This document shows, in pieces, positions 5,615-38,292 of a DNA stretch of 64,000 nucleotides. Numbering within the stretch: position 1 is the first letter of the stretch; the number at the start of each line of letters is the position of its first letter. The notes beneath the pieces were generated by a model. The model saw only the letters and a list, made by a program, of their open reading frames with translations, made no database searches and had not been told where the DNA came from. Made by a program: the position numbers and the translations under genes. Source of the DNA: Mobula birostris (lineage: Eukaryota); assembly GCF_030028105.1 (NCBI RefSeq), contig NC_092384.1:3763665-3827664 (forward strand), in the 5' to 3' direction.

Positions 5615-6114
5615 GTAAGACGTTACATTTGCTTGACCCATATTTAGTTTCACTAGCATATTGCAGTTGAAATGGCTTTGAGAAGGGTAAATCATCCATG
5701 ATGAAAAATAGGTTTAGGTAGATGTGCTTGAGAGTCTATCTAACAGCTGAGTGTTGTGTTCAGAACAAGATTTAAAACGCAGTTTACTTAGTTTACTTTA
5801 CTTTACTTTACTTTAGTTTTTTGAAACAACTAAAAACGGTATTGTTAACTCTGCAAGAAGTGTAGCAAATTTAGAGTGTTTGTTGCCACAGGACAACATA
5901 TGCAACCACAGAGACTGAATAATTTTAGGCAATACACTAAGACAATTTTTATCACCAGTAACATCATCATTGGGTGGCTTGATAAAATGACAAGAATGGC
6001 ATCAGATCACTGACCTATTTCGAACGGATCTGGTTGCTGCTGGAATATTCAATAACATTCGGTGCGCCTGTTCAAATGCTGAGGATGAAATTGGTCACTT
6101 TTTATTTCCTCTAG

Positions 6115-6161
6115 TAGCAGCGGAAAATGATGAGAATTTAAGTCGACAGCTGAAAAATCAG
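6115..6161 (+). CDS. Gene A first cytoplasmic exon
   Basis: VAAENDENLSRQLKNQ; 47 nt, homologous to 48778-48824. Confidence 0.8.
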
Positions 6162-6269
6162 GTAAGATTAATATTATTATGACATATATAGGGGTTTACA
6201 AATTTTGTACATACACCCTATATCAGTAGCACATAATTAGAGCAAAGAATGACTGTCACTTTGTATGTA

Positions 6270-6810
6270 ACACCTTATGTTCTAGGATCGCATGGTTCAT
6301 TTTTGTTTTGTATCTATGGCTTATGTAGTGCAGCATCTTCAGCGATATATTTATTCAGAGGAGGTTCACAATGACGATTCCAGGAATGAAAGCTGTATCA
6401 CACGAGGAAATTTTGATGTCTCTGGGTCTGCACGTAAAGGCCCAGACAAAGTAGATTTGGAAAGGATGTTTCCCGTGGTCGGAGAGTCTCGGACAAGACA
6501 GAAAAGCCTCAGCATAGACGGGCGCCCATAAAGACCGAGAGGTGGAGACTTTTCTTTAGCCGAAAGTCGTGAATTTGTGGATTTTTTTTTTTTTTGCCAC
6601 ATATCGCTGTGGAGGCAATTCATTAGGTGTATTTAAGGCAGAGATGGACAGGCACTTGATTGAACACGGCATCAAAGGTTATGGAAGAAGGCCGGGACCT
6701 GGAGTTTAGGAGAAGAAAATAAAGTATTAGGCATGGTTGAATGGCAGAGCAAACTCGAATGGCCAGATGGATTAATTCTGCTCCTATGTCTGATGGTCTT
6801 CTAGTCTTAG
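6270..6810 (+). mobile_element. Old CR1 3' fragment (paralog at about 48940-49525)
   Basis: Remnant ...MFPVVGESRTRQKSLSIDGRP and typical CR1 3' UTR. Confidence 0.7.
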
Positions 6811-7062
6811 TCAGGAACTCCTTATGTTCTCCAAGACACTGCAATTTATAATTTTACCTAATCATTTTACTTGAGGCGCATAATTTTCTATTTGGGCATT
6901 CGTACTGACAAAATAATGTTTTGGACAGTGGATGGTGCTGATATTTGAGAGATTATGTTGTCGACGTCGTCAGACCCCACGACATGGGAGTCATCTTTAG
7001 AACGTGCCGACATCATAATCTGTCAGAATTCAGCCCTAGACGCTCTTCTATTTATTTCGTTA

Positions 7063-7075
7063 ACACACACACACA

Positions 7076-7114
<39 letters not shown>
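7063..7114 (+). repeat. (CA)n microsatellite; counterparts at 49830-49884 and 51208-51240
   Basis: Direct inspection. Confidence 0.95.
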
Positions 7115-7118
<4 letters not shown>

Positions 7119-7943
7119 ACTTGGAAAGTGTATGGTTATGCACATTGACAGAGGAAATAAACGGACAGACTATTATTTAAATGGGAAGAAAATTCAATGT
7201 TCTGAGATGGAACGGGACTTGGGAGTCCTCGTGTAGGCTACCCTTAAGGTTAAACTCCAGGTTGAGTAGGTGGTGAAGAAGGCGAATGCAATGTTGGCAT
7301 TTATTTGTAGAGGAATAGATTATAGGAGCAGGGATGTGATGTTGAGGCTCTATAAGGCGCTGGTGAGACCTCGCTTGGAGTACTGTGGGCAGCTTTGGTC
7401 TCCTTATTTAAGAAATGATGTGCTGACGTTGGAGAGGGTACAGAGAAGATTCACTAGAATGATTCCGGGAATGAGAGGGTTAACATATGAGGAACGTTTG
7501 TCCGCTCTTGGACTGTATTCTTTGGAGTTTAGAAGAATGACGGGGACCTCATAGAAGCACTCCAACTGTTGAAAGGCATGGACAGACTGGATGTGGCAAA
7601 GTTGTTTCCCATGATGGGGGAGTCTAGAACGAGACGGCATGAATTAAGGATTGAAGGGCGCCCATTAAGAACAGAAATGCGAAGGTTTGTTTTTTTATTT
7701 AGGCAGAGGGTGGTGAATGTATGGAATTTCTTGCCACGGGCGGCAGTGGAGACCAAGTCATTGGGTGTATTTAAGGCAGAGGTTGATACGTATCTGAGTA
7801 GTCAAGGCATCAAAGTTTATGGTGAGAAGGCGGGAGAATGGGACTAAATGGGAGAATGGATCAGTTCATGATAAAATAGCGGAGCAGACTCGATGGGCCA
7901 AATGGACGACTTCTGCTCTTTTGTCTTATGGTCTTTTGGTCTT
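7115..7943 (+). mobile_element. 5'-truncated CR1 LINE, present in copy A only
   Basis: ORF 7270-7554 LVRPRLEYCGQLWSP...ERVQRRFTR; absent after the (CA)n of copy B. Confidence 0.88.
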
Positions 7944-8077
7944 TATCTTTGAGACATTTTTACGCCAACATCTTATCGATGCAATTACAAAGAAAACATG
8001 GCAGAGGCTATACTTGATTTGGAGTTTGAAGAGATTCGGCATGTTATCGAAGACACTAGCAAGTCTGTACAGATATA

Positions 8078-9912
8078 CAGTGCCATGCAAAAGTTTCGGC
8101 ACCCCGGTCAAATTTTCTATTACTGTGCATAGCTAAGCGAGTTAACTATGACACATTTATTTAAAATTTAAACAGGATTACTTTTCATTTCCATCGTTTA
8201 CAGTTTGAAAACAACAAAAAAGGAAAAGGGCCCGAAGTAATGTTTGAGCACCCTGCATGGTAAGTACATAGAAACACCTCCTTTGGCAAGTGTCACAGCT
8301 TGTAATCGCTTTTTGTAGCCAGCTAAGAGTCCTTCCGTTCTTGTTTGGGGGATTTTCGCCAATCCTCCATGCAAAAGGCTTGTAGTTCTGTGAGATTCTT
8401 AGGCAATGGTGCACACGCTGCTCCTTTGAGGTCTATCCACAGATTTTTGATGATATTTAGGTGGGGGAACTGTTAGGGCTATGGCAAAACTTTCAGCTTG
8501 CGCCTCTTGAGGTAGTCCGTTGTGGATTTTCAAGTATGTTTAAGATCATTATCCTGTTGTAGAAAACATCCTCTTTTCATCTTCACCTTTTTTACAGACG
8601 GTGTGATGTTTGCTTCCATTATTTGCTGGTAATTAACTGAATTCATTCTTCACTCTATTCGTGAAACCCTTCCCGTGCCCCCGGCTGCAAAACAAGCTCA
8701 AAGCATGATCGAACCACCCCCGTGCTTAACAATTGGTGAGGTGTTCTTTTCATGAAATTCTGCACCCTTTATTCTCCAAGCATACCTTTGCTTATTGCGG
8801 CAATAAAGTTATATTTTAACTTAATCAGTCCACAGGTCTTGTTTTCAAAATGCATCAGGCTTGTTTAGATGTTACTTTGCACACGTGTGACGCTGACGTT
8901 TGTGGTGAGGATGATGGAAGGGTTTTGGAGAACAAAGGGTGTAGAATTAGATGAAAAGTACCCCTCTCCAACTGTTAAGCACGGGGAGTGGACTAATCAT
9001 GTTTTGGGCTTCTGTTACAGCCAGTGACACGGGGAACATTTCACTGGTAGAGGGAAGAATGAATTCAATTAATACCAGCAAATTCTGGAAGCAAACATCC
9101 CACCGTCTGTAAAAAAGCTGAGGATAAAAAGAGGATGGCTTCTACAACAGGATAATGATACAGGGACTAAGGATCGATTAAGAGGAATCGATCTGTGATT
9201 ATTAGTGCCTGAAATAGCGACCCTGTGGAGTCTGCCAGTGTGTCCAACCCTTTCCAGGGTTGGTAGATTATCACTTGAAGACGGCGCTCTTAAGTTGGTC
9301 ACGTTTGGCCAACTTGGAAGTTTGGGAGGACATCGAAGAGGATGGACGACACCTGTCTACTTGGATTACGAGTCTCTCTCTCTCTCTCTCTCTCTTCAAT
9401 CGCGTGGACAGAACTGAATATCCTTACCACACTATCGTACGACTGTATCAATTACCATTGAAGTTTGAAGAAGTTTGTGTTTTGTATTTAAACACCTATA
9501 AATGAATAAACTCTGCTAACCTGTTTGAATTTCTGGTTTTATGTTACTCTATTACGTAATTACTAATAAAATAGTGTTAGTTAACAGCAAAACCACACTC
9601 CAGGTGTCTTCCATTTTACTGGTTCTTTTAAGCACGTTACGGGCTATGTAACAGTGGATAGACCTCAAAAGAGCAGTGGATGCAAGATGGCCCAAGAATC
9701 CCACATAACTAGAAGTCTTTCGCACAGAAGAATGGGCGAAAATTCCCCAAACAAGAATGGAAAGACTTTTAGCTATCTGCAAAAAGCGTTTACAGGCTGT
9801 GATACTTGCCAAAGGGTGTGATACTAAGTACTGACCAAGCAGGGTGGCCAAACTTCTGTTTCGGGCTTTTTTGTTATTTTGAAACTGTAAAAGTTGGATA
9901 TAAAAAAGTAAT
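8078..9912. mobile_element. Fold-back Tc1/mariner: 3' half inverted then 3' half forward. Interrupted by an LTR fragment 9195-9653; last about 120 bp displaced to 12548-12666 by CR1.
   Basis: TA+CAGTGCCATGCAAAAGTTT terminus at 8076; 8600-8760 is the reverse complement of 8960-9110. Confidence 0.8.
9195..9653 (+). mobile_element. LTR-like fragment
   Basis: Ends ...gggctatgtaaca, contains (CT)n and AATAAA, interrupts Tc1. Confidence 0.5.
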
Positions 9913-12547
9913 ACTGTTACAGCTACGGAAAGGGTGGGTAATGAATCAGGATCCTGTTTTGAGTCAGTATGAGTGGAAGTCAGGAACAGGACGGGAGCAG
10001 TTACTCAATTGGGGGTATTCTATAGACCTCCTGGTAGCAGCAGAGACACAGAGGATCAGATTGGCTGGCAGATTCTGGAAAAGTGCAAATTTAACAGTGT
10101 TGTTGCCATGGGTGACTTTAACTTCCGTAATATTGATTGGCACCTGATTAGTTTCAATGGTTTAGATGGGGCAGAGTTTGTTAAGTGTGTCCAGGACGGA
10201 TTGTTGTCACAGTATGTGGACACGACGACCAGGGGGAATGCCATACTAGATCTCGTACTAGGTAATAGACCGGGTCAGGTCACAGAACTCTCAGTGGATG
10301 AACATCTGGGGGACAGTGACCACCGCTCCCTGGCCTTTAGCATTATCATAGAAAAGGATAGAATCAGAGAGGACAGAAAAAAAAATAATTGGGTTAGGGC
10401 AAATTATGAGGCTATAAGGCTAGAACTTGCGGGTGTGAATTGGGATGATGTTTTTGCAGAGAAATTTAGTATGGACATGTGGTCAATGTCCAGGGATCTC
10501 TTGCAGGATGTTAGGGATAAATTTGTCCCGGTGAGGAAGATAAAAAATGGTAGGGTGAAGGAATCATGGGTGACAAGTGAGGTGGAAAATCTAGTCAGGT
10601 GGAAGACGGCAGCATACATGAGGTTCAGGAAGCAGGGATCAGATGAGTCTATTGAAGAATATAGGGAAGCAACAAAGGAGCTTAGGAAGGAGCTGAGAAG
10701 AGCAAGAAGGGGGCATGAGAAGACCTTGGCGAGTAGGGTAATGGAAAACCCCAAGGCATTCTTCAATTATGTGAAGAACAGAAGGACGACAGGAGTGAAG
10801 GTAGGACCGATTAGAGATAAAGGTGCGAAGATGTGCCTGGAAGCTGTGGAAGTGAGCGAGGTCCTCATGAATGCTTTTCTTCAGTACTCACCAATGAGAG
10901 GGAACTTGATGATGGGGAGGACAATATGAGTGAGGTTGATGCTCTTTAGCATGGTGATATTAAGGGAGAAGATGTGCTGGAGTTGTTAAAATACATTAGA
11001 ACTGATTAGTCCCCGGGGCCTGACGGAATATTCCCCAGCCTGCTCCACGCAGCGAGATGGGAGATTACTGAGCATCTGGCTAGGATCTTTATGTTCTTAT
11101 TGTCCACGGGAATGGTACCAGAGCATTGGAGGGAGGCGAATGTTGTCTCCTTGCTCAAAAAAGTTAATAGTGATAGTCCGGGTAATTATAGACCAGTCAG
11201 CCTTGCGTCTGTTGTGGGAAAGCTGTTGGAAAAGATTCTTCGAGATATGATCGATGGGCATTTAGAGAATCATGGTCTGATCAGGGACAGTCAACATGGC
11301 GTTGTGCAGGACAGATCGTGTCTAACAAACTTGATAGTGTTCTTTGAGGAGGTGACCAGGCATATTGATGAAGGTAGTGCAGTGGATGTGATCTATATGG
11401 ATTTTCGTAAGGCGTTTGACAATGTACCCCACGGTAGGCTTATTCAGAAAGTCAGAAGGCATGGGATCCAGGGAAGTTTGGCCAGGTGGATTCAGAATTT
11501 GCTTGCCTGCAGAGGGTAGTGGGTCGTGGTAGAGGGAGTACATTCAGATTGGAGGGTTGTGACTAGTGGTGTCGCACAAGGATCTGTTCTGGGACCTCTA
11601 CTGTTCGTGATTTTTAATAACGACCTGGAATTGGGGGTGGAAGGGTGGGTTGGCAAGTTTGCAGACGACACAAAGTTTGGTGGTGTTGTAGATAGTGTAG
11701 AGTATTGTCAAAGAATGCAGAGACATTTATAGGATGCAGAAGTGGGCTTAGAAGTGACAGATGGAATTCAACCCATAGTAGTGTGAGGTGGTACACTTTG
11801 GAAAGACAAACTCAAAGGCAGAGTACAAAGTAAATGGCAGGATGCTTGGTAATGTGGGAGAGTATAGGGATCTGATGGTACAAGTCCACAGATCCCTGCA
11901 AATTGCCTCACATGTGGAGATGGTAGTTAAGAAAGGTTATGAGGTGTTAGCTTTCATAAGTCGAGGGATAGAGTTTAAGAGTCGCGATGTAATGATGCAG
12001 CTCTATAAAATTCTGGTTAGGCCACACTTGGAGTACTGTTTCCAGTTCTGGTCACCTCACTATAGGAAGGATGTGGAAATATTGGAAAGGGTACAGAGGA
12101 TATTTACCAGGATGCTGCCTGTTTTAGAGAGTATGCATTATGATCAGAGATTGAGGGAGCTAGGACTTTACTCTTTGGAGAGAAGGAGGATGAGAGGCGA
12201 TACGATAGAGGTGTACAAGATAATAAGACGAATAGATAGAGTGGATAGTCAGCGCCTCTTCCCCAAGGCACCACTTCTCAATACAAGACGACATGGCTTT
12301 AAGGTAAGGGGTGAGAAGTTCAAGGGGGATATTAGAGAAAGTTTTTCTTTTATTCAGAGAGTTGTTGTTGCATGGAATGCACTGCCTCAGTCAGTGGTGG
12401 GGGCAGATACGCTAGTGAAGTTTAAGAGACTACTAGACAGGTATATGGAGGAATTTAAGGTGGGGGGTTATATTGGACGCAGGGTTTGAGGGTCGGCACA
12501 ACATTGTGGGCCGAAGTGTCTGTACTATTCTATGTTCTATGTTCTAT
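9913..12547 (+). mobile_element. CR1 LINE (APE plus RT, frameshifted), copy A only
   Basis: ORFs 9973-10929 (YRPP, GDFN), 11091-11519, 11526-11732 (FADD), 11788-12489; (TTCTATG)n tail; gtaat on both flanks. Confidence 0.92.
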
Positions 12548-12666
12548 GTAATCTTGCTTACAATATTAAAGACATATGTCATCTTTAATTCTATTCCTTT
12601 TTGGAAATCAGGTAATCTATTTCTCGCTCAGCTATTCACATAACAGAAATTTTGACCGGCGTGCAC

Positions 12667-13558
12667 TCGCTGTTAGGGCTATGGCTTGTTCACAATCATC
12701 GTTAGCAAACGCCAGATGATGCAAATGTCAAAGCTTTATAAATACCCTGAGTACTAAATCCTTGTCCCAACAAAAGCAGCCATGGGCTCCTCTAAGCAGC
12801 GACTAAGCACTCTGAAAATTAAAATAATTGATGCCCACAAAGCAGGAGAAGGCCGTTTCCTCAGTTCCTAAAGTAATTAAGAAATAACGGTTAACAGGAA
12901 CGGTGGAGGTCAAGTTGAGGTCTGGAAGACCAAGAAAACTTCCCGAGAGAACTGCTCGTAGGATTGCTAGAAAAGCAAATTAACACTTCCGTTTGACTTC
13001 AGAAGACCTATAGGAAGATTTAGCACATTCTGGAGCGGTGGTGCACTGTTCTACTGTGCAGCGATATCTGCACAAATTATAACGTTCATAGGGAGTCATC
13101 AGAAGAAAATGTTTCCTGCGTCCTTACCATAAACGTCAGCATCAGACGTTTGCAAAGTAACATCTAAACTAGCCTGATACATTTTCAAAACAAGCCCTGT
13201 GGACTGATGAAGTTAAAATAGAACTTTTTGGTCGAAATAAGCAAAGGTATGTTTGGAGTAAAAAAAAAAGGGCGAGGAATTTCCTGAAAGAAACATCTCT
13301 CCAACTGTTAAGCACGGGGGTGGATTGCACATGATTTGAGCTCGTTTTGCAGCCAGCGGCACGGAGACCATTACACTGGTAGAGGGAGGAATGAATTCAA
13401 TTACATGCCAGCAAATTGCGGAAGCAAACATCACACAGTCTGTAAAAAAAAGCTGAAGATGGAAAGAGGATGACTTCTACAACAGGATAATGATCCTGAA
13501 CACACTTGAAAGTCCAAAATGGACTGCCTCAAGAGGCGCGAGCTGAAGATCTCGTCAT
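12667..13558 (+). mobile_element. Tc1 transposase pseudogene fragment
   Basis: Colinear with 51520-52410 (GRPRKL region); ends abruptly at CR1. Confidence 0.82.
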
Positions 13559-16500
13559 TTCTCTGATCAATTGCATGACATTCTGAACTGGGAGGGTGAT
13601 CAGCCAGATGTCGTGTTGCACATCGGTACCAATGACATAGCAAGGAAGAGTGAGGAGGTCCTGGAGAGTGAGTATAGGGAGCTTGGTAGGAAGTTGAAAA
13701 GCAAGACCTCGAGGGTGGTAATCTCAGGACTGCTACCTGTGCTGCGTGCCAGTGAGGGTAGGAAAAGGATGCTCTGGAGGATGAGCAAGTGGCTGAGGAA
13801 ACTGGAGTAGGGGGCTGGGTTTCAGATTTCAGGATCATTGGGACCTCTTCTGTGGCAGGTGGGACCTGTACAAGAGAGACGGGTTACACTTGAACTACAG
13901 GGGGACCAATATCCTTTCAGGGAGGTTTGTTAGTGCTATTGGGGAGGCGTTAAACTAGATTTACAGGGGGAGTGGGAACCAGAGTGCCAGAGCTGACAGT
14001 GTGGCTGGGGTGAAAATAAATGTTGTTAAAAGTTCAAGCAAATCCGCTAATAGAAAGGTTGTGAGTGGTGGTAAAAATATTCTGAGATGTATATACTTCA
14101 ATGCTAGGAGTATTGCGGGGAAGGCGGATGAGTTGAGGGCGTGGAGATTGACACGTGGAATTATGACGCTATAGCAATTAGTGAATCTTGGCTACAGGAG
14201 GGGCAGGACTGGCAGCTTAATATTCCAGGGTTCCGATGTTTCAGATGTGATCGAGGCAGAGGAATGAAAGGTAGGGGAGTAGCATTGCTTGTTAGGGAAA
14301 ATATTACAGAAGTGCTCAGGCAGGACAGATTAGAGGGCTTGTCAACTGAGTCTTTCTGGGTGGAGCTGAGAAACGGGAAAAGGTATGGCCACATTAGTGG
14401 GATTGTATTACAGACCACCCAGTAGTGAACGAGAATTGGAAGAGCAGAACTTCAGGGAGATAGCAGGCAACTGCAGGGAACATAAAGTTCTGGTGGTAGG
14501 GGATTTTAATTTTCCATATATTGATTGGGACTCCCATACTGTTAGGGGTCTAGATGGTTTAGAGTTTGTAAAATGTGTTCAGGAAAGTTTCCTAAATCAA
14601 TATATAGAGGGACCAACTAGAGGGGATGCAATATTGGATCTCCTGTTAGGGAACGAGTTAAGACAAGTGACGGAAGTCTGTGTAGGGTTGCACTTTGATT
14701 CCAGTGATCGTAACACCATTAGTTTCAACCTGATCATGGACAAGGATAGACCTGGTCCTAGGGTTGAGGTTCTTAACTGGAAGAAGGCCAAATTTGAAGA
14801 AATCAGAAAGGATCTAAAAAGTGTGGATTGGGACAGGTTGTTCTCTGGCAAGGATGTGATTAGTAGGTGGGAAGCCTTCAAAGGAGAAATTCTGGGAGTG
14901 CAGAATTTGTATGTTCCTGTCAGGATTAAAGGCAAAGTGAATAGGAATAAGGAACCTTGGGTCTCAAGGGATATTGCAACTCTGATAAAGAAGAAGAGGG
15001 AGTTGTATCACATGTATAGGAAGTAGGGAGTAAATAAGGTGCTTGAGGAGTATAAGAAGTGCAAGAAAATACTTAAGAAAGAAATCAGGAGGGCTAAAAG
15101 AGGACATGAGGTTGCCTTGGCAGTCAAAGTGAAGGATAATCCAAAGAGCTTTTACAGGTATATTAACAGCAAAAGGATTGTAAGGGATAAAATTGGTCCT
15201 CCTGAAGAACAGAGTGGTCGGCTATGTGCGGAACCATAGAAAATGGGGGAGAACTTTTTTTTTTTTGCGTCTGTATTTAGAACATAGAACATAGAATAGT
15301 ACAGCACAGTACAGGCCTTCGGCCCACAATGTTGTGCCGACCCCTCAAACCCTGCCTCCCATATAAGCCCCCACCTTAAATTCCTCCATATACCTGTCTA
15401 GTAGTCTCTTAAACTTCACTAGTGTATCTGCCTCCACCACTGACTCAGGCAGTGCATTCCACACACCAACCACTCTGAGTAAAAAACCTTCCTCTAATAT
15501 CCCCCTTGAACTTCCCACCCCTTGCCTTAAAGCCATGTCCTCTTGTATTGAGCAGTGGTACCCTGGAGAAGAGGCGCTGGCTATCCACTCTATCTAATCC
15601 TCTTACTATCTTGTACACCTTTATCATGTCTCCTCTCAACCTCCTTCTCTCCAAAGAGTGAAGTCCTAGCTCCCTTAATCTCGGATCATAATGCATACTT
15701 TCTAAACCAGGCAGCATCCTGGTAAATCTCCTTTGTACCCTTTCCAATGCTTCCAAATCCTTCCTATAGTGAGGTGACCAGAACTGGACACAGTACTCCA
15801 AGTGTGGTCTAACCAGAGTTTTATAGAGCTGCATCATTACATCGCGACTCTTAAACTCTATCCCTCGACTTAAGAAAGCTAACACCCCATAAGCTTTCTT
15901 AACTACCCTATCCACCTGTGAGGCAACTTTCTGGGATCTATGAACATGTACCCCGAGATCCCTCTGCTCCTCCACACTACCAAGTATCCTGCCATTTACT
16001 TTGTACTCTGCCTTAGAGTTTGTCCTTCCAAAGTGTACCACCTCACACTTCTCTGGGTTGAACTCATCTGGCACTTCTCAGCCCACTTCTGCATCCTATC
16101 AATGTCTCTCTGCAACCTTTGACAATCCTCTACACTATCTACAACACCACCAACCTTTGTGTCGTCTGCAAACTTGCCAAACCACTCTTCTACCCTCACA
16201 TCCAGGTCGTTAATAAAAATCACGAAAAGTAGAGGTTCCAGAACAGATCCTTGTGCGACACCACTAGTCACAATCCTCCAATCTGAATGTACTCCCTCCA
16301 CCACCACCCTCTGCCTTCTGCAGGCAAGCCAATTCTGAACCCACCTGGCCAAACTTCCCTGGATCCCATGCCTTCTAACATTCTGAATAAGACTACATTG
16401 TAGAACCCTGTCAAATGCCTTACTAAAATCCATATAGATCACATCCATTGCACTACCCTCATCTATATGCCTGGTCACCTCCTCAAAAAACTCTATCAGG

Positions 16501-18672
16501 CTTGTTAGACATGATCTGCTCTTCACAAAGCCATGCTGACTGTCCCTGACCACACCATGATTCTCTAATTGCCTATAGATCCTATCTCTAAGAATCTTTT
16601 CCAACAACTTTCCCACCACAGACGTAAGACTCACTGGTCTATAATTACCCGGACTATCCCTACTACCTTTTTTGAACAAGGGGTCAACATTCGCCTCCCT
16701 CCAATCCTCCGATACCATTCCCGTGGTCAACGAGGACATAACGATCCTAGCCAGATGCTCAGCAATCTCTTCTCTCGCCTCGTGGAGCAGCCTGGGGAAT
16801 ATTCCGTCATGCCCCGGAGACTTATCTGTCCTAATGTATTTTAACAACTCCAACACCTCCTCTCCCTTAATATCAACATGCTCCAGAACATCAACTTCAC
16901 TCATATTGTCCTCACCGTCATCAAGTTCCCTCTCATTGGTAAATACCGAAGAGAAGTGTTCATTGAGGACCTCGCTCACTTTCACAGTTCCATTTATTAA
17001 GGAAACTGGCATGAAGTCTATGGAATTAGTGGAAACAAGTAGTAAATCGTGGAAACTGTACAGATCGAAAAGGAGGAGGTCCTTGCTGTCTTGAGGAAAA
17101 TTAAACTGGATAAATCCCCGGGACCTGACAGGGTGTTCCCTCGGACCTTGAAGGAGACTAGTGTTGAAATTGCAGGGGCCCTGGTAGAAATATTTAAAGT
17201 GTCGCTGTCTACAGGTGAGGTGCCGGAGGATTGGAGAGTGGCTCATGTTGTTCCGTTGTTTAAAAAAGGATCGAAAAGTAATCCGGGAAATTATAGGCCG
17301 GTAAATTTAACTTCAGTAGTAGGTATGTTATTGGAGGGAGTACTAAGAGACAGAATCTACAAGTATTTGAATAGACAGAGACTTATTAGGGAGAGTCAAA
17401 ATGGCTTTGTGTTAGGTCATGTGTTAGAAATCTGTTGGAGTTTTTCGAGGAGGTTACCAGGAAAGTGGATGAAGGGAAGGCAGTGGATATTGTCTACATG
17501 GGCTTCAGTAAGGCCTTTGACAAGGTCCCGCATGGGAGGTTAGTTAGGAAAATTCAGTCGCTAGGTATAAATGGAGATGTGATAAATTGGATCAGACATT
17601 GACTCAATGGAAGAAGGCAAAGAGTGGTAGTAGAGAATTGCTTCTCCGAGTGGACGCCTGTGACTAGTGGTGTGCCACAGGGATCAGTGCTGGGTCTATT
17701 GTTATTTGTCATCTATATCAATGATGATAATGTGGTAAATTTGATCAGCAAATTTGCGGATGATACTAAGATTGGAGGTGTAGTATACAATGAGGAAGGT
17801 TTTCAGAGCCTGCAGAAGGACTTGGACCATCTGGAAAAATGGGCTAAATAATGGCAGATGGAGTTTAATGCAGACAAGTGTGAGGTATTGCACGTTGGAA
17901 GGACAAACCAAGTTGGAACATACAAGGTTAATGGTAAGGCACTGAGGAGTGCAGTGGAACAGAGGGATCTGGGAATACAGATACAAAATTCCCTAAAAGT
18001 GGAGTCACCGGTAGATAGGGTCGTAAAGAGAGCTTGTGGTACATTGGCCTTCATTAATCAAGTATTGAGTATGAGAACTGACATGTTATGATGAGGTTGT
18101 ATAAGGCATTGGTGAGGCCGAATCTGGGGTGTTGTGTTCAGTTTTGGTCACCAAATTACAGGAAGGATATAAATAAGATTGAAAGCATGCAGACAGGGTC
18201 TACAGGGTTGTTGCCGGGACTTCAGAAACTCAGTTACAGAGAAAGGTTGAATAGGTTAGGACTTTATTCCCTGGAGCGTTGAAGAATGAGGGGAGCTTTG
18301 ATAGAGGTATATAAAATTACGATAGGTATAGGTGGAGTGATTGCAAGCAGGCTTTTTCCACTGAGGCAAGGGGAGAAAAAAAACAGAGGACATGGGTTAA
18401 GGGTGAGGGGGGAAATGTTTAAAGGGAACATCAGGGGGTGTTTCTTCACACAGAGAGTGGTGGGAGTAAGGAATGAGCTGCCAGACGAACTGGTAAATGC
18501 GGGATTTTTTTTTACATTTAAGAATAAATTTGACAGATACATGGATGGGAGGTGTATGGAGGGATATGGTCCGTGTGCAGGTCAGTGAGACTAGGCATAA
18601 AATGGTTCGGCACAGCCAAGAAGGGCCAAAAGGCCTCTTTCTGTGCTGTAGTTTCTATGGTTTCTATGGTTT
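13559..18672 (+). mobile_element. CR1 LINE with ORF1 esterase remnant and ORF2; split by an antisense CR1 at 15280-16990
   Basis: DQPDVVLHIGTNDI (SGNH esterase), APE ORFs 14141-15239, RT ORFs 17049-18588, (TTTCTATGG)n tail. Confidence 0.9.
15280..16990 (-). mobile_element. CR1 LINE nested in CR1
   Basis: RT ORFs 15996-17246 and 15445-16074; tail agaacatagaacatag; attta on both flanks. Confidence 0.92.
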
Positions 18673-18956
18673 TCTAATTTCACTTGTCACATGACTGAAA
18701 TGTTCCCACAGCATATGGACTTACTTTAAAGGACTTTTCATCTCTTGTTCTCAATATTTATTGCTTATTTATTGTTATTTCTGTCTGTTTGTTTTTTCTG
18801 TCTGATTTTTTTTTAAATTTGGAATTCGTAACTGCTGATCTAATGGTTGTAATTTTTCCCCCCCACTAATTAATATCGGTTACCTTTGTTTATTTAGGCA
18901 TTGATATCATCACGGAATATCTTCGAAGTATTCCGTAGAGAAGATGGAAAGATGGA

Positions 18957-19625
18957 TAATGAAACAGGTATTTATCACAAAGGGGGGGGGGGGCGGTGGC
19001 CTTGATGGCGGGCCCAAATGGAAGACACAGACACTGAAGTACAAGGAAAAGGACTTGACTAGAGCTGGGACGTGGCAGGATACAGATAAGGAGCAGGGAC
19101 AAGAACGCAGACTTGGGCTAGGACAAGGACAAGAAACAGGGAACCCGGATAAGGAACTATAAACTAGGAGCCTGGGCATGGGAAAGCGGGAGCAGGACTG
19201 GGAACCATGGACTTGGAACCTGTGCTTGGACTGGACAAGGACCCAGAACCTCGGTCTTGCTTCGGGCTCGGTCCCCAGTACTAAGCACGGTCATGACATG
19301 GCTACCAGACTGGAGACTGGATCCCTGAGGCTTGAGGCTTGGAGATAGGCTTGGGGTCTTGAGGCTTGAGGCTTGGAGACAGGCTTGGGGTCTTGCGGCT
19401 TGAGGCTTGGAGACGGACTTGGGGTCTTGCGGCTTGAGGCTTCGAGACGGGCTTGGGGTCGTGAGGCTTGAGGATTGGAGACAGGCTTGGGGTCTTGAGA
19501 CTTGAGGGTTGGAGACAGGTTTGGTGTCTTGAGGCTTGAGTCTCGGAGACAGGCTTGGGGCCTTGAGGCTTGAGGCTAGGAGACAGTCCTTGGGTCTTGG
19601 GTCTTGGGTCTTGGGTCTAGGGTAC
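18957..19625 (-). mobile_element. LTR-like element with internal (CTTGAGG)-rich tandem repeats
   Basis: Reverse complement ends gtgtcttccatttgggcc...tttgtgata like 28618; repeats 19320-19620. Confidence 0.55.
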
Positions 19626-19835
19626 TTCGAAGCTTGGGTATGGACTCGCATTAGGGTATTTACTCGCATAAATATCCGTTGCAACTATTTTTTTCTTAAT
19701 GTATCTACAGAAGACCCGGAAATTCTCCTTCACCTTGTCTGCTAGAGCACTCGCGTCTTCCTTAAGCCATCCTCATTTCTGTCTTGAATGTCCCCTTACA
19801 TTTCTTACACTTTTCAAGCACTTATTTCACTCCTA

Positions 19836-20135
19836 CCGTCTCTTCTAGGCCAAAACTCCGTGCTCCCGTCTCTTCTAGTCCAAGGCTCCGTGCTCCCGCC
19901 TCTTCTAGTCCAAGGTTCTGTGCTCCCGTCTCTTCTAGTCCAAGCCTCCGTGCTCCTGTCTCTTCTAGTCCAAGGTTCCGTGATCCTGTCTCTTCTAGTC
20001 CAAGGCTCCGTGCTCCCGCCTCTTCTAGTCCAAGCCTCCGTGCTCCCGTCTCTTCTAGTCCAAGGCTCCGTGATCCCGTCTCTTCTAGTCCAAGGCTCCG
20101 TGCTCCCCTCTCTTTTAGTCCAAAGCGCCGTGCTC
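19836..20135 (+). repeat. 30-bp minisatellite, 10 units (ccgtctcttctagtccaaggctccgtgctc)
   Basis: Direct count. Confidence 0.95.
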
Positions 20136-20572
20136 CTGAAGGCCCTCGTCCAGTCCATGCCTACTCCCGTCCTATCAGAGTCCTGTCCATGTGACTCTAC
20201 CTGTCCTTGTATCTCGCCCTACACAGGTGCTCCTCACCCAAGCCATGTCCAGTCCTGTAGCCTCGTCTTTTCCTCGTCTAGTTCTGGTGTCCGATCCCGA
20301 GTCAAGTCCCAGGTTCTGGGTCCGTATCAAGTCCTGGCTCCGAGATTCCAAGTATCAAGTCCTGGCTCCGGGATTCCAAGTATCAGGTCCTGGCTCCGGG
20401 GTTCCAAGAATCAAGTCCTGGCTCCGGGGTCCGTGTTCCGAGTCTTTGTCCCTTACGCTTATTCCCACTTCCACTTTGCTCTCCTTGTAACGAGCAATGA
20501 ACTCAATTTAGTTAACCCTACAAAACGTGTTTGTGTCCTGTATTTCGGTCCATCCTTGCTCGGCACGTGTAA
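20136..20572 (+). mobile_element. LTR-like element 3' part with 28-bp repeats (about 20325-20430)
   Basis: Ends gtcctgtatttcggtcc...tgtaaca; related to 24990-25880. Confidence 0.55.
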
Positions 20573-20810
20573 CAGAAATGAGATAAGGAGGAATTTCTTT
20601 AGCCAGAGACTGGTGAACATATGGATTTCTTTGCTACAGGCAACTGTGGAGGCCATGTCTATATACATATTTATAGGCAGAGTTTGATCGATCTTATTGG
20701 TCTGGGAATGAAGGGATTTAGGGAGAAGGCAGGAGACTGGGTGTGAGAGGATAATTGGATTAGCCAAGATGAACTAGTGGAGCAGACATGATGATCCAGT
20801 TGCCCGAAAT
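20573..20810 (+). mobile_element. CR1 3' tail fragment
   Basis: EIRRNFFSQRLVNIW motif and CR1 3' UTR. Confidence 0.7.
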
Positions 20811-22182
20811 CTGTTCTATATATTGTGGTCCTAAGACTTACAACTTTCACAAAGGAATACGGTAAAGATTACCAGAGGTAAACCATCCAATCTCGGAACA
20901 AGAAAGTAGGATGTCCTTGGCGATCCCTCATCAGGCTAACAATCTTGATTTGTTTAATAATGACCTGTATTACACCCTGATATCAGTTATGCCCAAATTA
21001 CTCAATTCCATTTACAACTCGTCAGCAATTCTTCACGATAAGCAGCAACTAATAGTTGAAGAATTGCCGGAATATGAAGGTACACAAAACTGCAGCTTAT
21101 AACAACATATCGTTGGAAGAACATGACACTGCAATCGTGTCATCCCCGTCATTAACTGTCACAACAATGGATTCGGCAGCGCAGCAGATTCAGCAATTAC
21201 ACTTGTGAATATGCACGTGTCAGCTAATTATTATTTCATAGTGGTAGCATTTAACTCCATTGATTCCGTCGTAGTATTTGTCCAGCCTTGTACACAGCAC
21301 AGCAAAGCTTGGTTGCCTGTTTGTAATTGGCCTTGCATGAGAAATTGGACGGTCGAGTCAGCTGAATCCGAACACTAGCGTTATTCTATTAATATTTAGA
21401 TGATCTTTTCCGCCGCAGTGTGAGCTTCCTTTTCCATTTGAGGGTTTTAGTTAACGGCCCTGTTTGGCCTAGCGTTTATTGTTTTATTTTCCCTTTAACA
21501 CTCTTTGCATTAAAGTTTGTGAACTATCGTCCCGCTTTAATGTCTCTCACTCCGCACTTTAGCCATATCTGAACCAGGTGAAATTAACTCCCTGATGGTC
21601 ATCAAGAACTATTAATTTGACTGGACTAGCCACATAAATATCATAGCGTTTCAAAACTTGGAAATCTTGGAGTAAGCGACTCAACTCCACACATTGCAAA
21701 ATCTTTCCTCGTTCTCCAAACCATAAATTTGGTGTGGCAGAATTAACTTCACTGCTTCAGGTAAGTGCAGCTTCAACAACTCTCCAGAAAATTAGCACAA
21801 TTCAACGTAAAACAACCCATTTAATTATTATTAGTCTATTGACCTAAGTTTTCATTCTCGTCATGGGAGGTATGAGAAACTCGCACTGCCCTATGTTGGG
21901 TGTATTCCATCATTTTCTCCATCGTCACATGGCATACATTGAAAACTATCTCCCAATAGAGGGTGAAGCTAGCAGATGGATTGTAACTGTTCAATGCGGC
22001 TGCCACCAACACCTACTCAATGGAAATAATAGGCAATAAAGTCTGTCCCGCCCAACGACGTCGAATGGCACCAATCAATTGCAATAAAACTGAAGAGACA
22101 AAGTGAGCGTGTTTAAATGCGCGAGACTGCATTCTGTAACATGGAAAAACACAAAAAACATAAATACAGCAATGATAATTGT

Positions 22183-22353
22183 TTACAAATATTTTATCAT
22201 TGATTTTGCTAGTTCCTCCATGAATTTACTCGTTCTACATACCTGGGCATATATTTTATTCTGTTCAGAATCTCTGACTATAGTGGACGTCTTGGCCCGA
22301 GCCATATTTAGAGTGACGTATGTTAGCTTTTGATCATCTTCGGATTGCTTTGT
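22183..22353 (-). CDS. Orphan terminal exon of a diverged ITIM receptor (or relic)
   Basis: Minus strand gattttcag| then TKQSEDDQKLTYVTLNMARAKTSTIVRDSEQNKIYAQVCRTSKFMEELAKSMIKYL*. Canonical ITIM LTYVTL plus YAQV; same phase and 23-aa Y-to-Y spacing as 53808-53975. Confidence 0.6.
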   Translation of the reverse strand, partial: TKQSEDDQKLTYVTLNMARAKTSTIVRDSEQNKIYAQVCRTSKFMEELAKSMIKYL

Positions 22354-22879
22354 CTGAAAATCATCAACAATTTGTTGTAATTTTTCCACCAATAAAATGT
22401 ATGTTTTTGCAATAAATATTTGGCCATAGCCCAAAAGTTACATCGCACTGGATATGACAGCAATGCACGGAGTGCCAGTAGCTTTGAAAAGTCAGTTATA
22501 ATTTAAATCTTGCGTTTCCTTTGATGAAGCAACCAAACAGTAAAACTGCTTTATCTTCTTCTACCGATCTCTAGTCATAAATGGAGAAACCTGGGCTTGC
22601 GGATCGAAAATAACAAAAAAAAAGTATTGATAACTTGAGTTAATAAAAAAAAAACATTTGATTCCCTGTGGAGATGGTAACGGAGCGCCTCAATTTTGAA
22701 TAAGTCAATTTTCAACAATCTGCTCTATTCGACAAAGAAACCCAGATTTAAGAGTGTGGGGAAATGTTTGGCTGCTCGTGTACAACTTTAGCAAATGAGA
22801 GATCATCAACTTTCAAAGGAAAAAAAATGAATATCGAGTATTAATTATACGTTGAAAAGTTTCAGCATGCGGTTTTCAG

Positions 22880-23450
22880 AGGCCTTGAGAGTCTTTGAAT
22901 GTATCGGAAAAGGTTGGTTACCTGACGAGAGAGGTTATCGAGAAGGCAAACGGTATGGTTTCCTTTGTTGAGAGAGGGTTTGTATTTAACAGCAGTAATT
23001 GCTCATGACACTGGTGCAGACGCACCGGGAGTACACCGTGCAATTGTAGTTTTCTTACTTGAGAATGAATATCCTGGCATCGGAGGCGATTCAATGAAGA
23101 TTCAATGTTTTATTCTAGAGAGGAGTGAATTTCCCCTAGGATAGATCGAGTTGCATGGGAGTTGCATGTACGCTGTAATTCAGAAGAATGGGCTGATATC
23201 TTATGGAAACATACAATATAATGGGAGGGATATACGTAAGGTACAGATAGTGACGAGCTAGAAGCCATAACCCCAATTCGGAGGAGGCATTAAGGACAAA
23301 AATGAGCAGGAACTGCTATTCTAAGAGATTTTTTTTTTTTTGTCGAATTCTATGCTCGGGGATTATTTTCGGCTACCTTATTTAATCTATTTGGGACACA
23401 GTTAATTTTTTGCACAGCGAGAATATTAAGGTTTACGAGAGAAATTAGCT
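22880..23450 (+). mobile_element. Highly decayed CR1 RT C-terminal fragment
   Basis: Degenerate KKANGMxAFI and GGDSMKI-like sequence. Confidence 0.45.
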
Positions 23451-24150
23451 GTATCTGAGATCACAGCCAGAGCAGTCATGATGCTACTGAATAACGCAGT
23501 CGGCTCGACCAGCAAGGTGGCCTACTGCTGCTTTTAACACTTGTGTTCTGGCGAGCTTTTTAAAAATTATTATGTCCTTAGTGTGGATGTAGCAATGGGT
23601 GTTAGAGACGGGCGTGACGGTACCATAATAATCATGCCTGACCTCAATAGTAATATTCCGTAATACAGTAAACGGAGAGTTGCTGGAATGCATTCGTGAT
23701 GGCATAACGAATCCGTTTTTGTCGTAACCGTCCAGAGAATGGAACATTCATGATTCAACGGAATGCAAATGGAACGCAGTAATAGCAGTCGTGTTGTGTG
23801 CGGTCCCGTGTTGAAGGCCCGCCATAGCACAGTCTAACTCTTTGTTGAATTGGAGAATAAGATAACTGATTTTGAGAATAATTTCCAGAGTCTAATACCA
23901 AGAAAGTAAGGCTAGAAAAGCTAAGACAGATTAGGTAACAATTCCAAAAGCGATTCAGAATCTAAGGAGAGCATAAATTTCCCATTGCTGTCCAGAGCAA
24001 ATGGAGCAACATAGTTTATATGGTTCAAATATAGCTCCCTATCATTAAACTGGTAAGTTGGTACATTAGAAAATTATTGTCGCATGCACCGGGCTACTAT
24101 GAAAATAAAATTGTTTTTAGCATGTCAAGAGGGAAAACAGATACAAATGC

Positions 24151-24960
24151 AGAGTAAAGTGTGGGTAATCAACCAGATGCAGAGTAAAGTGCGGGAAAAC
24201 AACAAGATTCAGAGTGAAGTGCGGGCAAACAACAAGATGCAGAGTAAAGTGCGGGAAAACAACAAGATGCAGAGTAAAGTGCGGGCAAACAACAAGGTGC
24301 AGAGTAAAGTGCGGACAAACAACAAGATTCAGAGGAAAGTGCGGGCAAACAACAAGATGCAGAGTAAAGTGCGGGCAATCAACAAGATGCAGAGTAAAGC
24401 GCGGGAAAACAACAAGATGCAGAGTAAAGTGCGGGCAAACAACAAGATGCAGAGTAAACTGCGGGCAAACAACAAGATGCAGAGCAAAGTGCGGACAAAC
24501 AACAAGATGCAGAGTAAAGTTCGGGCAAACAACAAGATGCAGAGTAAAGCGCGGGAAAACAACAAGATGCAGAGTAAAGCGCGGGCAAACAACAAGATGC
24601 AGAGTAAAGTGCGGGAAAACAACAAGATGCAGAGTAAAGTACGGGCAAGCAACAAGATGCAGAGTAAAGTTCGGGCAAACAACAAGATGCAGAGTAAAGC
24701 GCGGGAAAACAACAAGATGCAGAGTAAAGTGCGGGAAAACAACAAGATGCAGAGTAAAGCGAGGGCAAAAGAACAAGATGCAGAGTGAAGTGCGGGAAAA
24801 CAACAAGATGCAGAGTAAAGTGCGGGAAAACAACAAGATGCAGAGTGAAGTGCGGGCAAACAAGAAGATGTAGCGTAAAGTGCGGGCAAACAAACAAATG
24901 CAGAGTACAGTGCGGGCTAACAACAAGATGCAGAATAAAGTGCAGGCAAACAGATACAAA
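24151..24960 (+). repeat. 30-bp minisatellite, about 27 units (cagagtaaagtgcgggcaaacaacaagatg)
   Basis: Direct count; aaacagatacaaatgcagag occurs at both ends. Confidence 0.95.
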
Positions 24961-24989
24961 TGCAGAGATTTTTGGAGTTCAGTATTTTG

Positions 24990-25880
24990 GGAATTTGGGA
25001 GTTTGGGAATGCAGAGTTTCAGGATTCAGCCTCGGTCTTCGGGATTGTTCCTGGCCATACCCTCGTCTGAATCCTTTCCCTTCCTCTGCCTTCTGTTGCA
25101 TCGCTTCGCCTCGGCTGAAGCTTTGTCTCACCTCGCCTCGCCTGAAGCCATGTCTCGCCTCGTCTAAAACCTTGCCTCGCCTCGTCTGAAACCTTGACTC
25201 TCCTGTAACCCTCGCTGGCACTGCTGTCAAGTTCCATCGCCGGGGTAAGAGAAAGAAATGAGTATTGTTGTTTTGAACTGTCTCTGTGTCCAAGCCTTCG
25301 CTAGGTTGTTCCGCCGTCTGCCACTGCCTTTTATTGGGATCCGTCTTGTCGTATTCTGCATTCTGTGTAATGAGTCCCGGCCCTACGTCCTGTACCCAAG
25401 GAGGGGTCTCGGCTCTGTGTTCTGTGTATGAGCCCGGCCCTATGTGCTGTTCCAAGGAGGGGTGCCTGCTCTGTTTTCAATGCTCCTGTCTCTACCTCGA
25501 CCATGGCTCTGCGTTCCTGTCTCTACCTCGACTAGGAGTTCACGTTCCTGACTCTCGCTCGATCAATTTACGGCTTCGGGGTCTCGTTCAATCCTAGTCA
25601 TCAACCAAGAACCTTGTCCTCTCCAAGCCATGGCTTTGTATTCTCGTCTTGTCCATGTCTCTCGCCCAGCCCAGGAGTACCTTGCCCAGCCCCGTGTTGG
25701 GGGATCATGCGTCCTGTGCTGGTCTTCCCTCGGCCTGTGCTGTGGTTCGATTGTCCTGTCCAGAAGTCTCACCTCCAGTTCTGTTGCCACTCCTCTTCCT
25801 GTAGCCACGTCTTGTCCTCGCCTAGTTCTGGAGTCCGAGCCTGAGTGAAGTCCTAGGTTCTGGCTCCTTGCACAGTCTCT
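24990..25880 (+). mobile_element. LTR-like element fragment
   Basis: (CCTCG)-rich; shares cctgtagcc.cgtctt.tcctcg.ctagttctgg.gtccga with 20255-20320. Confidence 0.5.
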
Positions 25881-28617: not shown

Positions 28618-29260
28618 TGTCACAAACGGAGATGCTGGGGACGGACTCAAACTCAAGACACAGGCACTGAAGTAGAAGGAACACGACATGACTAGAGTAG
28701 GACGTGAACACAGAATTGGGCTAGGAAAAGCGGGACCAGGACTAGGAACCATGGACAATAAGACAAGGCTTGGACTCCGAGCCCGCGACTGGACAAGGAC
28801 CCAGAAGCTGGGTCTTGCCTCGGGCTCGGACCCCAGAAACAGGCAAGTAAATGCCATGGCTTGAGGCTTGAGGTCTTGGGTCTTGAGCTTAGCTTGGGGT
28901 CTTGGGTGTTGCGCTTGGCTTGGCATCCTCGGGGCTTAGGTTCTTCGATCTTGAGCATGGCCTGATATCCTCGAGGCTTGGGTTCTTGGGTCTTGAGCTT
29001 GGCTGCGGGATCCTCGAGGCTAGGGTTCTTGGAGCTTGGCTGCGGGATCGTCGAGGCTTCGGTGCATGAGACAGGACAGACCATAGACGCACAGCCAGGA
29101 ACAATCCGAAGACACGCCGGGATTCAACTTCTCCACACCAAGGTGGGACAGGTCCACCTGTTGCATAACGGCAGGACGGCCAGACTTACCCAACAGAGGC
29201 AAAGAGCGCCACACCCCCCCACACCCCGCAGGGCAACGGCATGTAATGTTTGTAATGTTT
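28618..29260 (-). mobile_element. LTR-like fragment, same type as 18957-19625
   Basis: tgtcacaaac...aagacacaggcactgaag; CTTGAGG repeats. Confidence 0.55.
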
Positions 29261-36435: not shown

Positions 36436-38292
36436 TACAACATAGAACATAGAATAGTACAGCACAGTACAGGCCCTTCGGCCCACAATGTTGTGCCGAC
36501 CCTCAAACCCTGCCTCCCATATAAGCCCCCACCTTAGATTCCTCCATATACATGTCTAGAAGTGTCTTAAACTTCACTAGTGTATCTGCCTCCACCACTG
36601 ACTCAGGCAGTGCATTCCACGCACCAACCACTCTCTGCGTAAAAAACCCTCCTCTAATACCCCCCTTGAACTTCCCACCTCTTACCTTAAAGCCTTATCC
36701 TCTTGTATAGAGCAGTGGTGCCCTGGAGAAGAGGTGCTGACTATCCACTGTATCTATTCCTCTTATTATCTTGTACACCTCTATCATGTCTCCTCTCATC
36801 CTCCTTCTCCCCAAAGAGTAAATCCCTAGCCCCCTTAATCTCTGATCATAATGCATACTTTCTAAACCAGGCAGCATCCTGGTAAATTTCCTCTGTACCC
36901 TTTCTAATGCTTCCACATCCATCCTATAAAGAGGTGACCAGAACTGGACACAGTTCTCCAAGTGTGGCCTAACCAGAGTTTTATAGAGCTGCATCATTAC
37001 ATCGCGACTCTTAAACTCTATCCCTCGACTTATGAAAGCTAACATCTCATAAGCTTTCTTAACTACCCTATCCACCTGCAAGGCAACTTTCAGGGATCTG
37101 TGGACATGTACCCCGAGATCCCTCTGCTCTTCCACACTACCAAGTATCCTGCCATTTATTTTGTACTCTGCCTTGGAGTTTGTCCTTCCAAAGTGTACCA
37201 CCTCACACTTCTCCGGGTTGAACTCCATCTGCCACTTCTGCATCCTATCAATGTTACTCCGCAATCTTTGACTATCCTCTACACTATCTACAACACCACC
37301 AACCTTTGCGTCGTCTGCAAACTTGCCAACCCACCCTTCTACACCCACATCCAGAACAGATCTTTGTGGGACACCACTAGTCACAATCCTCCAATCTGAA
37401 TGTAGTCCCTCCACCACCACCCTCTGCCTTCTGCAGGCAAGCCAATTCTGAATCCACGTGGCCAAACTTCCCTGGATCCCATGCCTTCTAACTTTCTGAA
37501 TAAGTCTGCCGTGTGGAACCTTGTCAAGTGCCTTTCTAAAATCTATATAGATCACATCCACTGCACTACCCTCATCTATATACCTGGTTTCCTCCTCTAA
37601 AAACTCTATCAGGCTTGTTAGACACGATCTGCCCTTCACAAAGCCATGCTGACTGCCCCAGATCAGCCCATGATTCTCTAAATGTCTATAGATCCTATCT
37701 TTAAGAATCTTTTCCAACAGCTTTCCCACCACAGACGTAAGGCTCACTGATCTATAATTACCCGGACTATCCCTACTAACTTTTTTGAACAAGGGAACAA
37801 CATCCACCTCCCTCCAATCCTCCGGTTACATTCTTGTGACAACGAGGACATAAAGATCCTAGCCAGAAGCTCAGCAATCTCTTCCCTCGCCTCGTGGAGT
37901 AGCCTGGGGAATATTCCATCAGGCCCCGGGGACTTATCTGTCCTAATATATTTTAACAACTCCAACTCCGCCTCTCCCTTAATATCAACATGCTCCAGAA
38001 CATCAACCTCACTCATATTCTCCTCACCATCATCAAGTTCCCTCTTATTGGTGAATTCCGAAGAGAAGTATTCATTGAGGATCTCTCTCACTTCCACAGC
38101 CTCCAGACACATCTTCCCAACTTTATCTCTAATCGGTCCTACCTTCACTCGTGTCATCCTTTTTTTCTTCACATAACTGAAGAATACCTTAGGGTTTCCC
38201 TTTACCCTACTCGCCAAGGCCTTCTCATGCCCCCTTCTTGCTCTTCTCAGCCCCTTCTTAAGCTCCTTTCTTGCTTCCCTATATTCCTCAAA
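36436..38292 (-). mobile_element. CR1 LINE immediately upstream of the gene B promoter
   Basis: ORFs 37744-38352 and 36695-37807 (RT); tail aacatagaacatag. Confidence 0.92.

Follow-up and report, generated by a model that had tools for sequence, protein, structure and literature searches.

A solitary inhibitory-tail exon in a Mobula birostris receptor cluster is very probably an inert copy of one exon of a minus-strand receptor gene

The window considered here, a stretch of 64,000 nucleotides of contig NC_092384.1 (C19) from Mobula birostris, raises the question of what a single minus-strand exon with a two-tyrosine, inhibitory-type tail is doing among receptor genes of the opposite strand. 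Read on the minus strand, gatgattttcag, which contains the acceptor gattttcag, is followed directly by ACAAAGCAA, and the first codons after the acceptor, from 22353, are ACA AAG CAA. The frame is open for 56 codons (22353 to 22186), translates to TKQSEDDQKLTYVTLNMARAKTSTIVRDSEQNKIYAQVCRTSKFMEELAKSMIKYL and is closed by TAA at 22185-22183. It carries KLTYVTL at 22309-22329 and KIYAQV at 22240-22257, and the last exon of gene B, on the plus strand, carries KLMYACV at 53829-53849 and TEYAGI at 53901-53918, with 22 residues between the tyrosines (a Tyr-to-Tyr distance of 23) in both cases. The acceptor, the open frame, the four motifs, this distance and the position of a donor inside the frame were all read correctly in a preliminary description of the sequence. 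It took the interval for a 56-codon exon and offered three origins for it: the end of an opposite-strand receptor whose long intron contains gene B, an inverted relic of an older paralog, or a tail with unrecognised upstream exons.

In a HMMER pass over 1.84 billion representative proteins, the translated frame had a single match, XP_072135201.1 (E 7e-13, residues 234-273 of 293), and a six-frame peptide search of the 4.0-Gb assembly located three copies, all on one contig and one strand and within 202 kb; a nucleotide search of the assembly gave the same picture. The genome search that had been proposed for paralogous tails thus yielded three copies and a parent gene with its upstream exons. 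The two results named beforehand as fatal to a receptor tail, namely no homologous tail anywhere or assignment to a known repeat, were not obtained, as there is an annotated homolog and there are three genomic copies. A dispersed repeat or transposable element was rejected as an identity for the interval on this count of only three in 4.0 Gb.

XP_072135201.1 belongs to an annotated minus-strand gene on the same contig and strand, ~140 kb further along (C19 about 3,911,211-3,938,552), here called the parent. RefSeq lists two products. The longer, isoform X1 (325 aa), bears the name 'natural cytotoxicity triggering receptor 3 ligand 1-like' (NCR3LG1-like); isoform X2, of 293 aa, is recorded as 'uncharacterized protein isoform X2 [Mobula birostris]'. 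The window was joined to the next 200 kb of the contig, giving 264 kb in which a "big" coordinate is the C19 position minus 3,763,664, and both isoforms were mapped onto it. Seven GT-AG exons spliced on the minus strand reproduce isoform X1 exactly (Table 1). The protein has one V-set and one C1-set domain, and the V domain is of the VJ type, closing with the J-like GTGTKLMVY. Isoform X2 uses an internal acceptor within the C1 exon and lacks the first 32 C1 residues, half of the domain. As a splice form it is probably minor or spurious. A record search for contigs encoding the isoform X1 protein gave no match.

Table 1. Positions of the stray exon, its duplicated surroundings, the parent exons and the genomic copies (window numbering unless marked C19, for the contig, or big, for the joined 264 kb)
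Feature	Position	Strand	Remarks
Solitary ITIM exon copy	22243..22353	-	111 nt, 37 codons, phase 0 to 0; peptide TKQSEDDQKLTYVTLNMARAKTSTIVRDSEQNKIYAQ
Intact acceptor gatgattttcag	22354..22365	-	same as acceptor used in parent gene
Intact donor gtatgtag	22235..22242	-	same as donor used in parent gene; CAG/gtatgt at 22243/22242
Frame read-through past donor, VCRTSKFMEELAKSMIKYL, then stop	22183..22242	-	corresponds to parent intron
Sole exon difference from parent	22256	-	ACA to AAA, Thr to Lys, two residues before second tyrosine
Duplicated block	20325..24570	-	~4.2 kb; 92.6% identity over 4272 aligned columns to C19:3924481-3928736 (big 160817-165072)
30-bp minisatellite, 27 copies	24143..24952	.	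homology to parent stops here
Rearranged, partly inverted, satellite-rich pieces of parent intron 3	18806..20344	.	match big 167295-168407; abut block directly
Parent exon 1, leader	big 174843-174888	-	46 nt
Parent exon 2, V	big 174337-174645	-	309 nt
Parent exon 3, C1	big 171739-172041	-	303 nt
Parent exon 4, TM	big 166346-166444	-	99 nt
Parent exon 5, mini-exon	big 165784-165821	-	38 nt
Parent exon 6, ITIM exon	big 162754-162864	-	111 nt, phase 0 to 0; acceptor gatgattttcag, donor gtatgtag
Parent exon 7, last exon, TIHGQNESQTEEINVNADYSIKT, then stop	big 147547-147618	-	72 nt, 15 kb downstream of exon 6
c1, window copy	22243..22353	-	query copy
c2, parent copy	C19:3926376-3926528	-	94% aa identity; DNA 95% over all 561 bases queried, flanks included
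c3, third copy	C19:3987677-3987823	-	55% aa identity, two stops

The stray exon and parent exon 6 are identical at 110 of 111 nucleotides (97% amino acid identity) and share acceptor, donor, phase, strand, the LTYVTL motif and the 22-residue spacing; unlike its parent, the stray exon stands alone, has one Thr changed to Lys, and has no RNA of its own seen. What is bounded by AG and GT at 22243-22353 is therefore a 37-codon exon of phase 0 to 0. The frame is indeed open for 56 codons as first described, but its homologous part is 37 codons and the last 19 correspond to parent intron. Openness over all 56 codons is peculiar to the window copy, because one extra A in the run 22204-22207, seen as a 1-base gap in the alignment of copy and parent, is specific to it; at the equivalent place the parent frame shuts earlier, reading ELANQ and a stop. 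The CAG/gt site, first considered a possible internal donor, is a donor but not an internal one, since it is the true exon end in the parent RefSeq models and matches the ends of RNA contigs (see below).

The first tyrosine lies in L-T-Y-V-T-L (22309-22326), which satisfies the ITIM consensus [ILVS]-x-Y-x-x-[ILV]. The second does not fit the ITSM consensus T-x-Y-x-x-[VI], as the window copy reads K-I-Y-A-Q-V, and even that only if the donor is ignored; in the parent the same motif is T-I-Y-A-Q-T when spliced and would be T-I-Y-A-Q-V unspliced. Two positions ahead of the second tyrosine, the parent, the third copy, Hypanus and unit 1 of Heptranchias all have threonine, and unit 1 of Heterodontus keeps the Thr and has no Tyr; the pattern T-I-Y-[AS]-[QE] is thus broken in the window copy by its Lys. 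The ACA to AAA change also generates an AATAAA hexamer within the stray exon (22254-22259, minus strand).

Six other open stretches of the window match a loose ITIM...ITIM/ITSM pattern that KIYAQV itself fails owing to its Lys, so that the pair of tyrosine motifs is, by itself, within chance expectation. The feature is real by homology, through its 97% identity over 37 residues to an annotated manta protein. A chance open frame, or membership of a dispersed repeat, might be argued from these six other stretches and from the LINE fragments and minisatellites around it; its identity to an annotated exon, the presence of orthologs in a stingray and two sharks, and the occurrence of only three copies in a 4-Gb genome leave that explanation a negligible probability.

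No companion exons of the parent's kind were encountered. Parent exons 2, 3, 4, 5 and 7 with 100-150 nt of flank had no match in the window by blastn at word size 7, and tblastn of the parent protein from 22.4 kb of the window to big ~147 kb gave no minus-strand V, C1, TM, mini or last exon. A pattern for the Ig F-strand motif likewise found nothing on the minus strand of the window, which, together with tblastn, bears out the earlier statement that it contains no minus-strand Ig-type exon. The suggestion to look for such exons beyond 64 kb had a mixed outcome: none occurs up to 147 kb, and the complete parent gene lies beyond. These searches support neither an opposite-strand receptor spanning gene B nor a tail with unrecognised upstream exons. 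The window copy does not belong to a gene with leader, V, C1, TM and terminal exons on its own strand; it is not a terminal exon, and it is not part of any gene at the locus.

The exon did not arrive by itself. It sits in a duplicated block (Table 1) that contains the counterpart of parent exon 6 with ~1.9 kb of downstream and ~2.2 kb of upstream intron. At one border the homology ends in a 30-bp minisatellite whose array at the same place in the parent is shorter, about 14 copies (big 164641-165072). At the other, rearranged pieces of parent intron 3 directly adjoin the block, and the TM and mini exons, which separate these two parts in the parent, are missing from the window. The ends of the duplicated block fall inside minisatellite arrays. 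Minisatellites of 22-56 bp flank the stray block at 24143-24952, 19326-19614, 19836-20136, 20324-20428, 25106-25562 and 28866-29038. Open frames for reverse transcriptase/endonuclease occur at 15996-17246, 36695-37807, 56306-58669 and 58587-59342 on the minus strand and at 9973-10929 on the plus strand; these are LINE-type retroelement fragments between the receptor genes.

An assembly artefact or haplotig was rejected, as a divergence of 7.4% over 4.2 kb, together with differing flanks, exceeds that of allelic copies. DNA runs from the same species contained 0.69-0.95 of the words of the stretch, all from one sample that is possibly the source of the assembly and so not independent; runs from two other organisms contained 0.22-0.26 of them, and the source of these words may be the stray copy or the parent alone. 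The neighbouring plus-strand gene duplicates are ~85% identical, against 92.6% for the stray block, and by this comparison the block looks younger than the plus-strand gene duplications. The earlier idea of an inverted relic of an older paralog can thus be kept in part: the exon is a relic of a paralog, but it lies on the same strand as its parent and is not older.

The exon is very probably an inert, single-exon pseudo-exon of parent exon 6, left behind by a partial duplication and now drifting. A partial and rearranged duplication would have placed the 4.2 kb around exon 6, with scraps of intron 3, between two plus-strand receptor genes. The copy is most likely inert because no promoter, leader, V, C1, TM or terminal exon goes with it and no transcript derived from it has been seen. 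Its splice sites and frame would still be intact only because too little time has passed for changes to build up.

Expression was considered with three small RNA runs of the same species, of tissue not known, at the level of contigs, which lose rare variants and show presence, not absence; they were aligned to window 19400-25300 (5.9 kb). One contig per run covers the exon, at exactly 22243-22354 (22243-22343 in the third run). These contigs have full lengths of 1574, 454 and 447 nt, and their remainder matches nothing in the 5.9 kb; as it falls outside, they represent spliced RNA in which the exon runs from the acceptor to the CAG/gt donor. Each shows exactly one mismatch to the window, and c1 and c2 differ once in that span, at 22256; the mismatch was not itemised, and its match to this position follows from the counts. 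Two intron contigs of low depth (22387-22608 and 23604-23810) carry the parent letter at 18 of 18 listed places, and the 12 and 8 differences that they show in all are as many as separate c1 from c2 over those spans. The parent letters in the intron contigs and the single exon mismatch therefore indicate that all of the RNA signal is cross-mapped from the parent, and none of the contigs in these three small contig-level runs was specific to the window copy. A short element at window 20582-20778 has a summed RNA-contig depth of about 5800-16900 in all three runs, with many loose ends at 20573-20586 and 20617 and a repeated skip of 112-114 bases at 20605-20721. The probable identity is an abundant, transcribed, SINE-like repeat within the duplicated block.

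These RNA data bear directly on the possibility that the copy is in use. An unannotated minus-strand transcript might include it as an alternative cassette or as a terminal exon; such a transcript could be a chimera or read-through product of the receptor cluster, or a non-coding RNA that has borrowed the splice sites of the copy. In favour of use, the acceptor, donor and frame are intact and identical to those of the parent, a phase 0-0 exon can be inserted into any phase-0 intron, and the flanks have diverged more than the exon (p 0.009-0.027, see below). Such use is nevertheless very unlikely, given that all informative RNA letters are those of the parent and no contig is specific to the copy, that no minus-strand partner exon of the receptor family occurs within 125 kb upstream, and that no protein containing ...NKIYAQ... 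was returned by either library search.

The low divergence of the exon deserves separate attention. Mismatches to the parent number 1 in 111 in the exon and 248 in 3747, or 6.6%, in the rest of the block (Fisher p 0.009); against the 850 bp on each side, with 93 mismatches in 1685, p is 0.027. This near-identity, with the intact acceptor, donor and frame, could reflect constraint or gene conversion. From the same rates, a Poisson estimate of our own that allows constraint on the parent alone gives ~3.8-4.6 expected differences and a probability of 0.06-0.11 for one or fewer, and for this reason drift of the stray copy is not rejected. Identity also rises to 95-98% along ~1 kb of intron downstream of the exon. 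The Thr to Lys change fits relaxed constraint, as far as one event may be so read.

Gene conversion is active in this receptor family, as indicated by the V exons of c2 and c3, which are identical at 308 of 309 positions within flanks of 73-93%. It is accordingly conceivable that the silent copy swaps sequence with the parent exon, as donor or acceptor of tail variants, and the contrast between the exon and its more divergent flanks would be explained in this way. Regional variation in rate could explain much of that contrast, however, to judge from the similar identity of the downstream intron; one difference where 4-5 are expected is no longer significant if the parent is taken to be under selection; and the sites are too few to place the boundaries of a tract. 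Exchange of this kind is regarded as improbable.

The third copy lies in a second full copy of the minus-strand receptor gene, at big 224000-236100 (C19 about 3,987,660-3,999,760), for which no RefSeq protein turned up. Compared with the parent, its V exon is identical at 308 of 309 nt and the adjoining 1 kb of intron at 96.7%, while the other flanks are 73-93% and the C1 exon 94% identical; the pattern suggests a conversion tract covering the ligand-binding domain. An in-frame TAA interrupts the ITIM exon of this gene. The TM exon reads ...GYLARGVMFFLILTFIVTG, Arg included, the GT of the aligned donor is gone, and read-through ends in RVKL and a stop. From these features the gene is a candidate for a tail-less or activating partner of the inhibitory gene, or for a pseudogene.

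For annotation, the consequence is that the proper label for the interval is gene fragment or pseudo-exon, assigned to the annotated minus-strand V-C1 receptor gene, and not hidden receptor. Reads and contigs of RNA-seq that derive from the parent cross-map onto the stray exon and could pass for its expression. A symmetric ITIM exon of 37 codons that can be copied as a separate unit in a still-duplicating cluster is of modest evolutionary interest, and the more interesting object, the parent V-C1-TM-ITIM family, is already predicted in databases. In a bolder proposal the solitary phase 0-0 ITIM exon would serve the cluster as a signalling cassette on stand-by, held near-identical by constraint or conversion and open to capture by, or exchange with, neighbouring receptor genes. 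This is doubtful to a high degree; if true, the exon would be a visible intermediate in the shuffling and multiplication of inhibitory tails, for which the two or three tandem units of sharks may be compared.

The likeness to the tail of gene B, with which the locus was first described, requires a more distant view. BLASTP of the 56 residues against the last exon of gene B gave no alignment at E up to 100, and direct pairwise homology to that exon was accordingly rejected. A profile was then built from six ray and shark units of 37 residues, excluding the window copy and gene B, and compared with the 8539 open frames of the 264 kb. It ranked c1 with E 2e-19, c3 with E 0.002, the last exon of gene B with E 0.0044 and that of the next plus-strand gene with E 0.012, and no other frame fell under E 0.6. 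The likeness therefore escapes BLASTP and gains weak support from the profile and from the 22-residue spacing, which is invariant. It probably represents distant, not recent, homology of a common signalling cassette, and these scores hint weakly at one ancestral tail cassette common to the plus-strand and minus-strand receptor families. The last exons of gene B (about 53808-53975, +) and of the next gene (big 98356-98535, +) resemble the stray exon in being phase-0 exons with an ITIM, 22 residues and a second tyrosine; unlike it, they are terminal, carry a canonical ITSM (TEYAGI) and lie on the opposite strand. The V and C1 domains of the plus-strand genes are just 30-37% identical to those of the parent.

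Closer relatives of the exon are found in other elasmobranchs, under RefSeq names that conflict within the receptor family. The 37-residue unit of Hypanus sabinus 'tapasin-related protein-like' is 78% identical and gapless; that of Heptranchias perlo 'SIRP/PTPNS1-like' is also gapless, with 38% identity (30% to unit 2) and the same tyrosine spacing; and Heterodontus francisci 'Ig lambda-1 light chain-like' aligns without gaps at 35% identity over 34 residues, its unit 1 being without the second Tyr. With the 97% of the parent, the BLASTP identities of the window copy are thus 97%, 78%, 38% and 35%, beside its profile E of 2e-19. Wherever both tyrosines occur in these ray and shark units, 22 residues lie between them. 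All of the ortholog units belong to complete receptor proteins, unlike the window copy. Units of 37 residues occur in tandem, three in Heptranchias and two in Heterodontus (residues about 265-368), and singly in rays. The arrangement suggests that the shark tandem units arose from a duplicated symmetric cassette exon; separate copying of the ITIM exon agrees with them and with the weak profile link to the plus-strand tails.

No description of this shark and ray receptor family was met in a literature search, which returned only reviews of SIRP and papers on unrelated receptors. In SIRP-alpha (PTPNS1/SHPS-1), a V-set domain precedes the C1-set domain(s) and a TM segment, and paired tyrosine motifs in the tail recruit SHP-1/SHP-2 (PMC12975943). 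The parent resembles it in combining V-set and C1-set domains with an ITIM and a second tyrosine. SIRP-alpha has two C1 domains, the parent has one, and the window copy is without an ectodomain; members of the SIRP family are described with one V-set and two C1-set domains (PMC12975943), an arrangement that the parent does not have and of which the window copy has neither domain. The likeness to SIRP-alpha is one of domain layout, with orthology not established. In the parent, exon 6 provides the canonical ITIM (LTYVTL) and the second conserved tyrosine (TIYAQ) and is spliced at CAG/gt to the last exon. By analogy with SIRP-alpha and other ITIM receptors, the tyrosines of this tail, when phosphorylated, would recruit SH2 phosphatases of the SHP type (PMC12975943).

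The stray exon, for its part, is an ordinary by-product of segmental duplication. Partial segmental duplication in clusters of immune-receptor genes leaves gene fragments and pseudo-exons, as exemplified by the KIR and LILR pseudogene fragments of mammals. The case described here is similar in that a partial receptor copy is stranded amid intact paralogs in a repeat-rich, still-duplicating cluster, and it differs from the KIR and LILR fragments in that the stray copy keeps one symmetric signalling exon intact.
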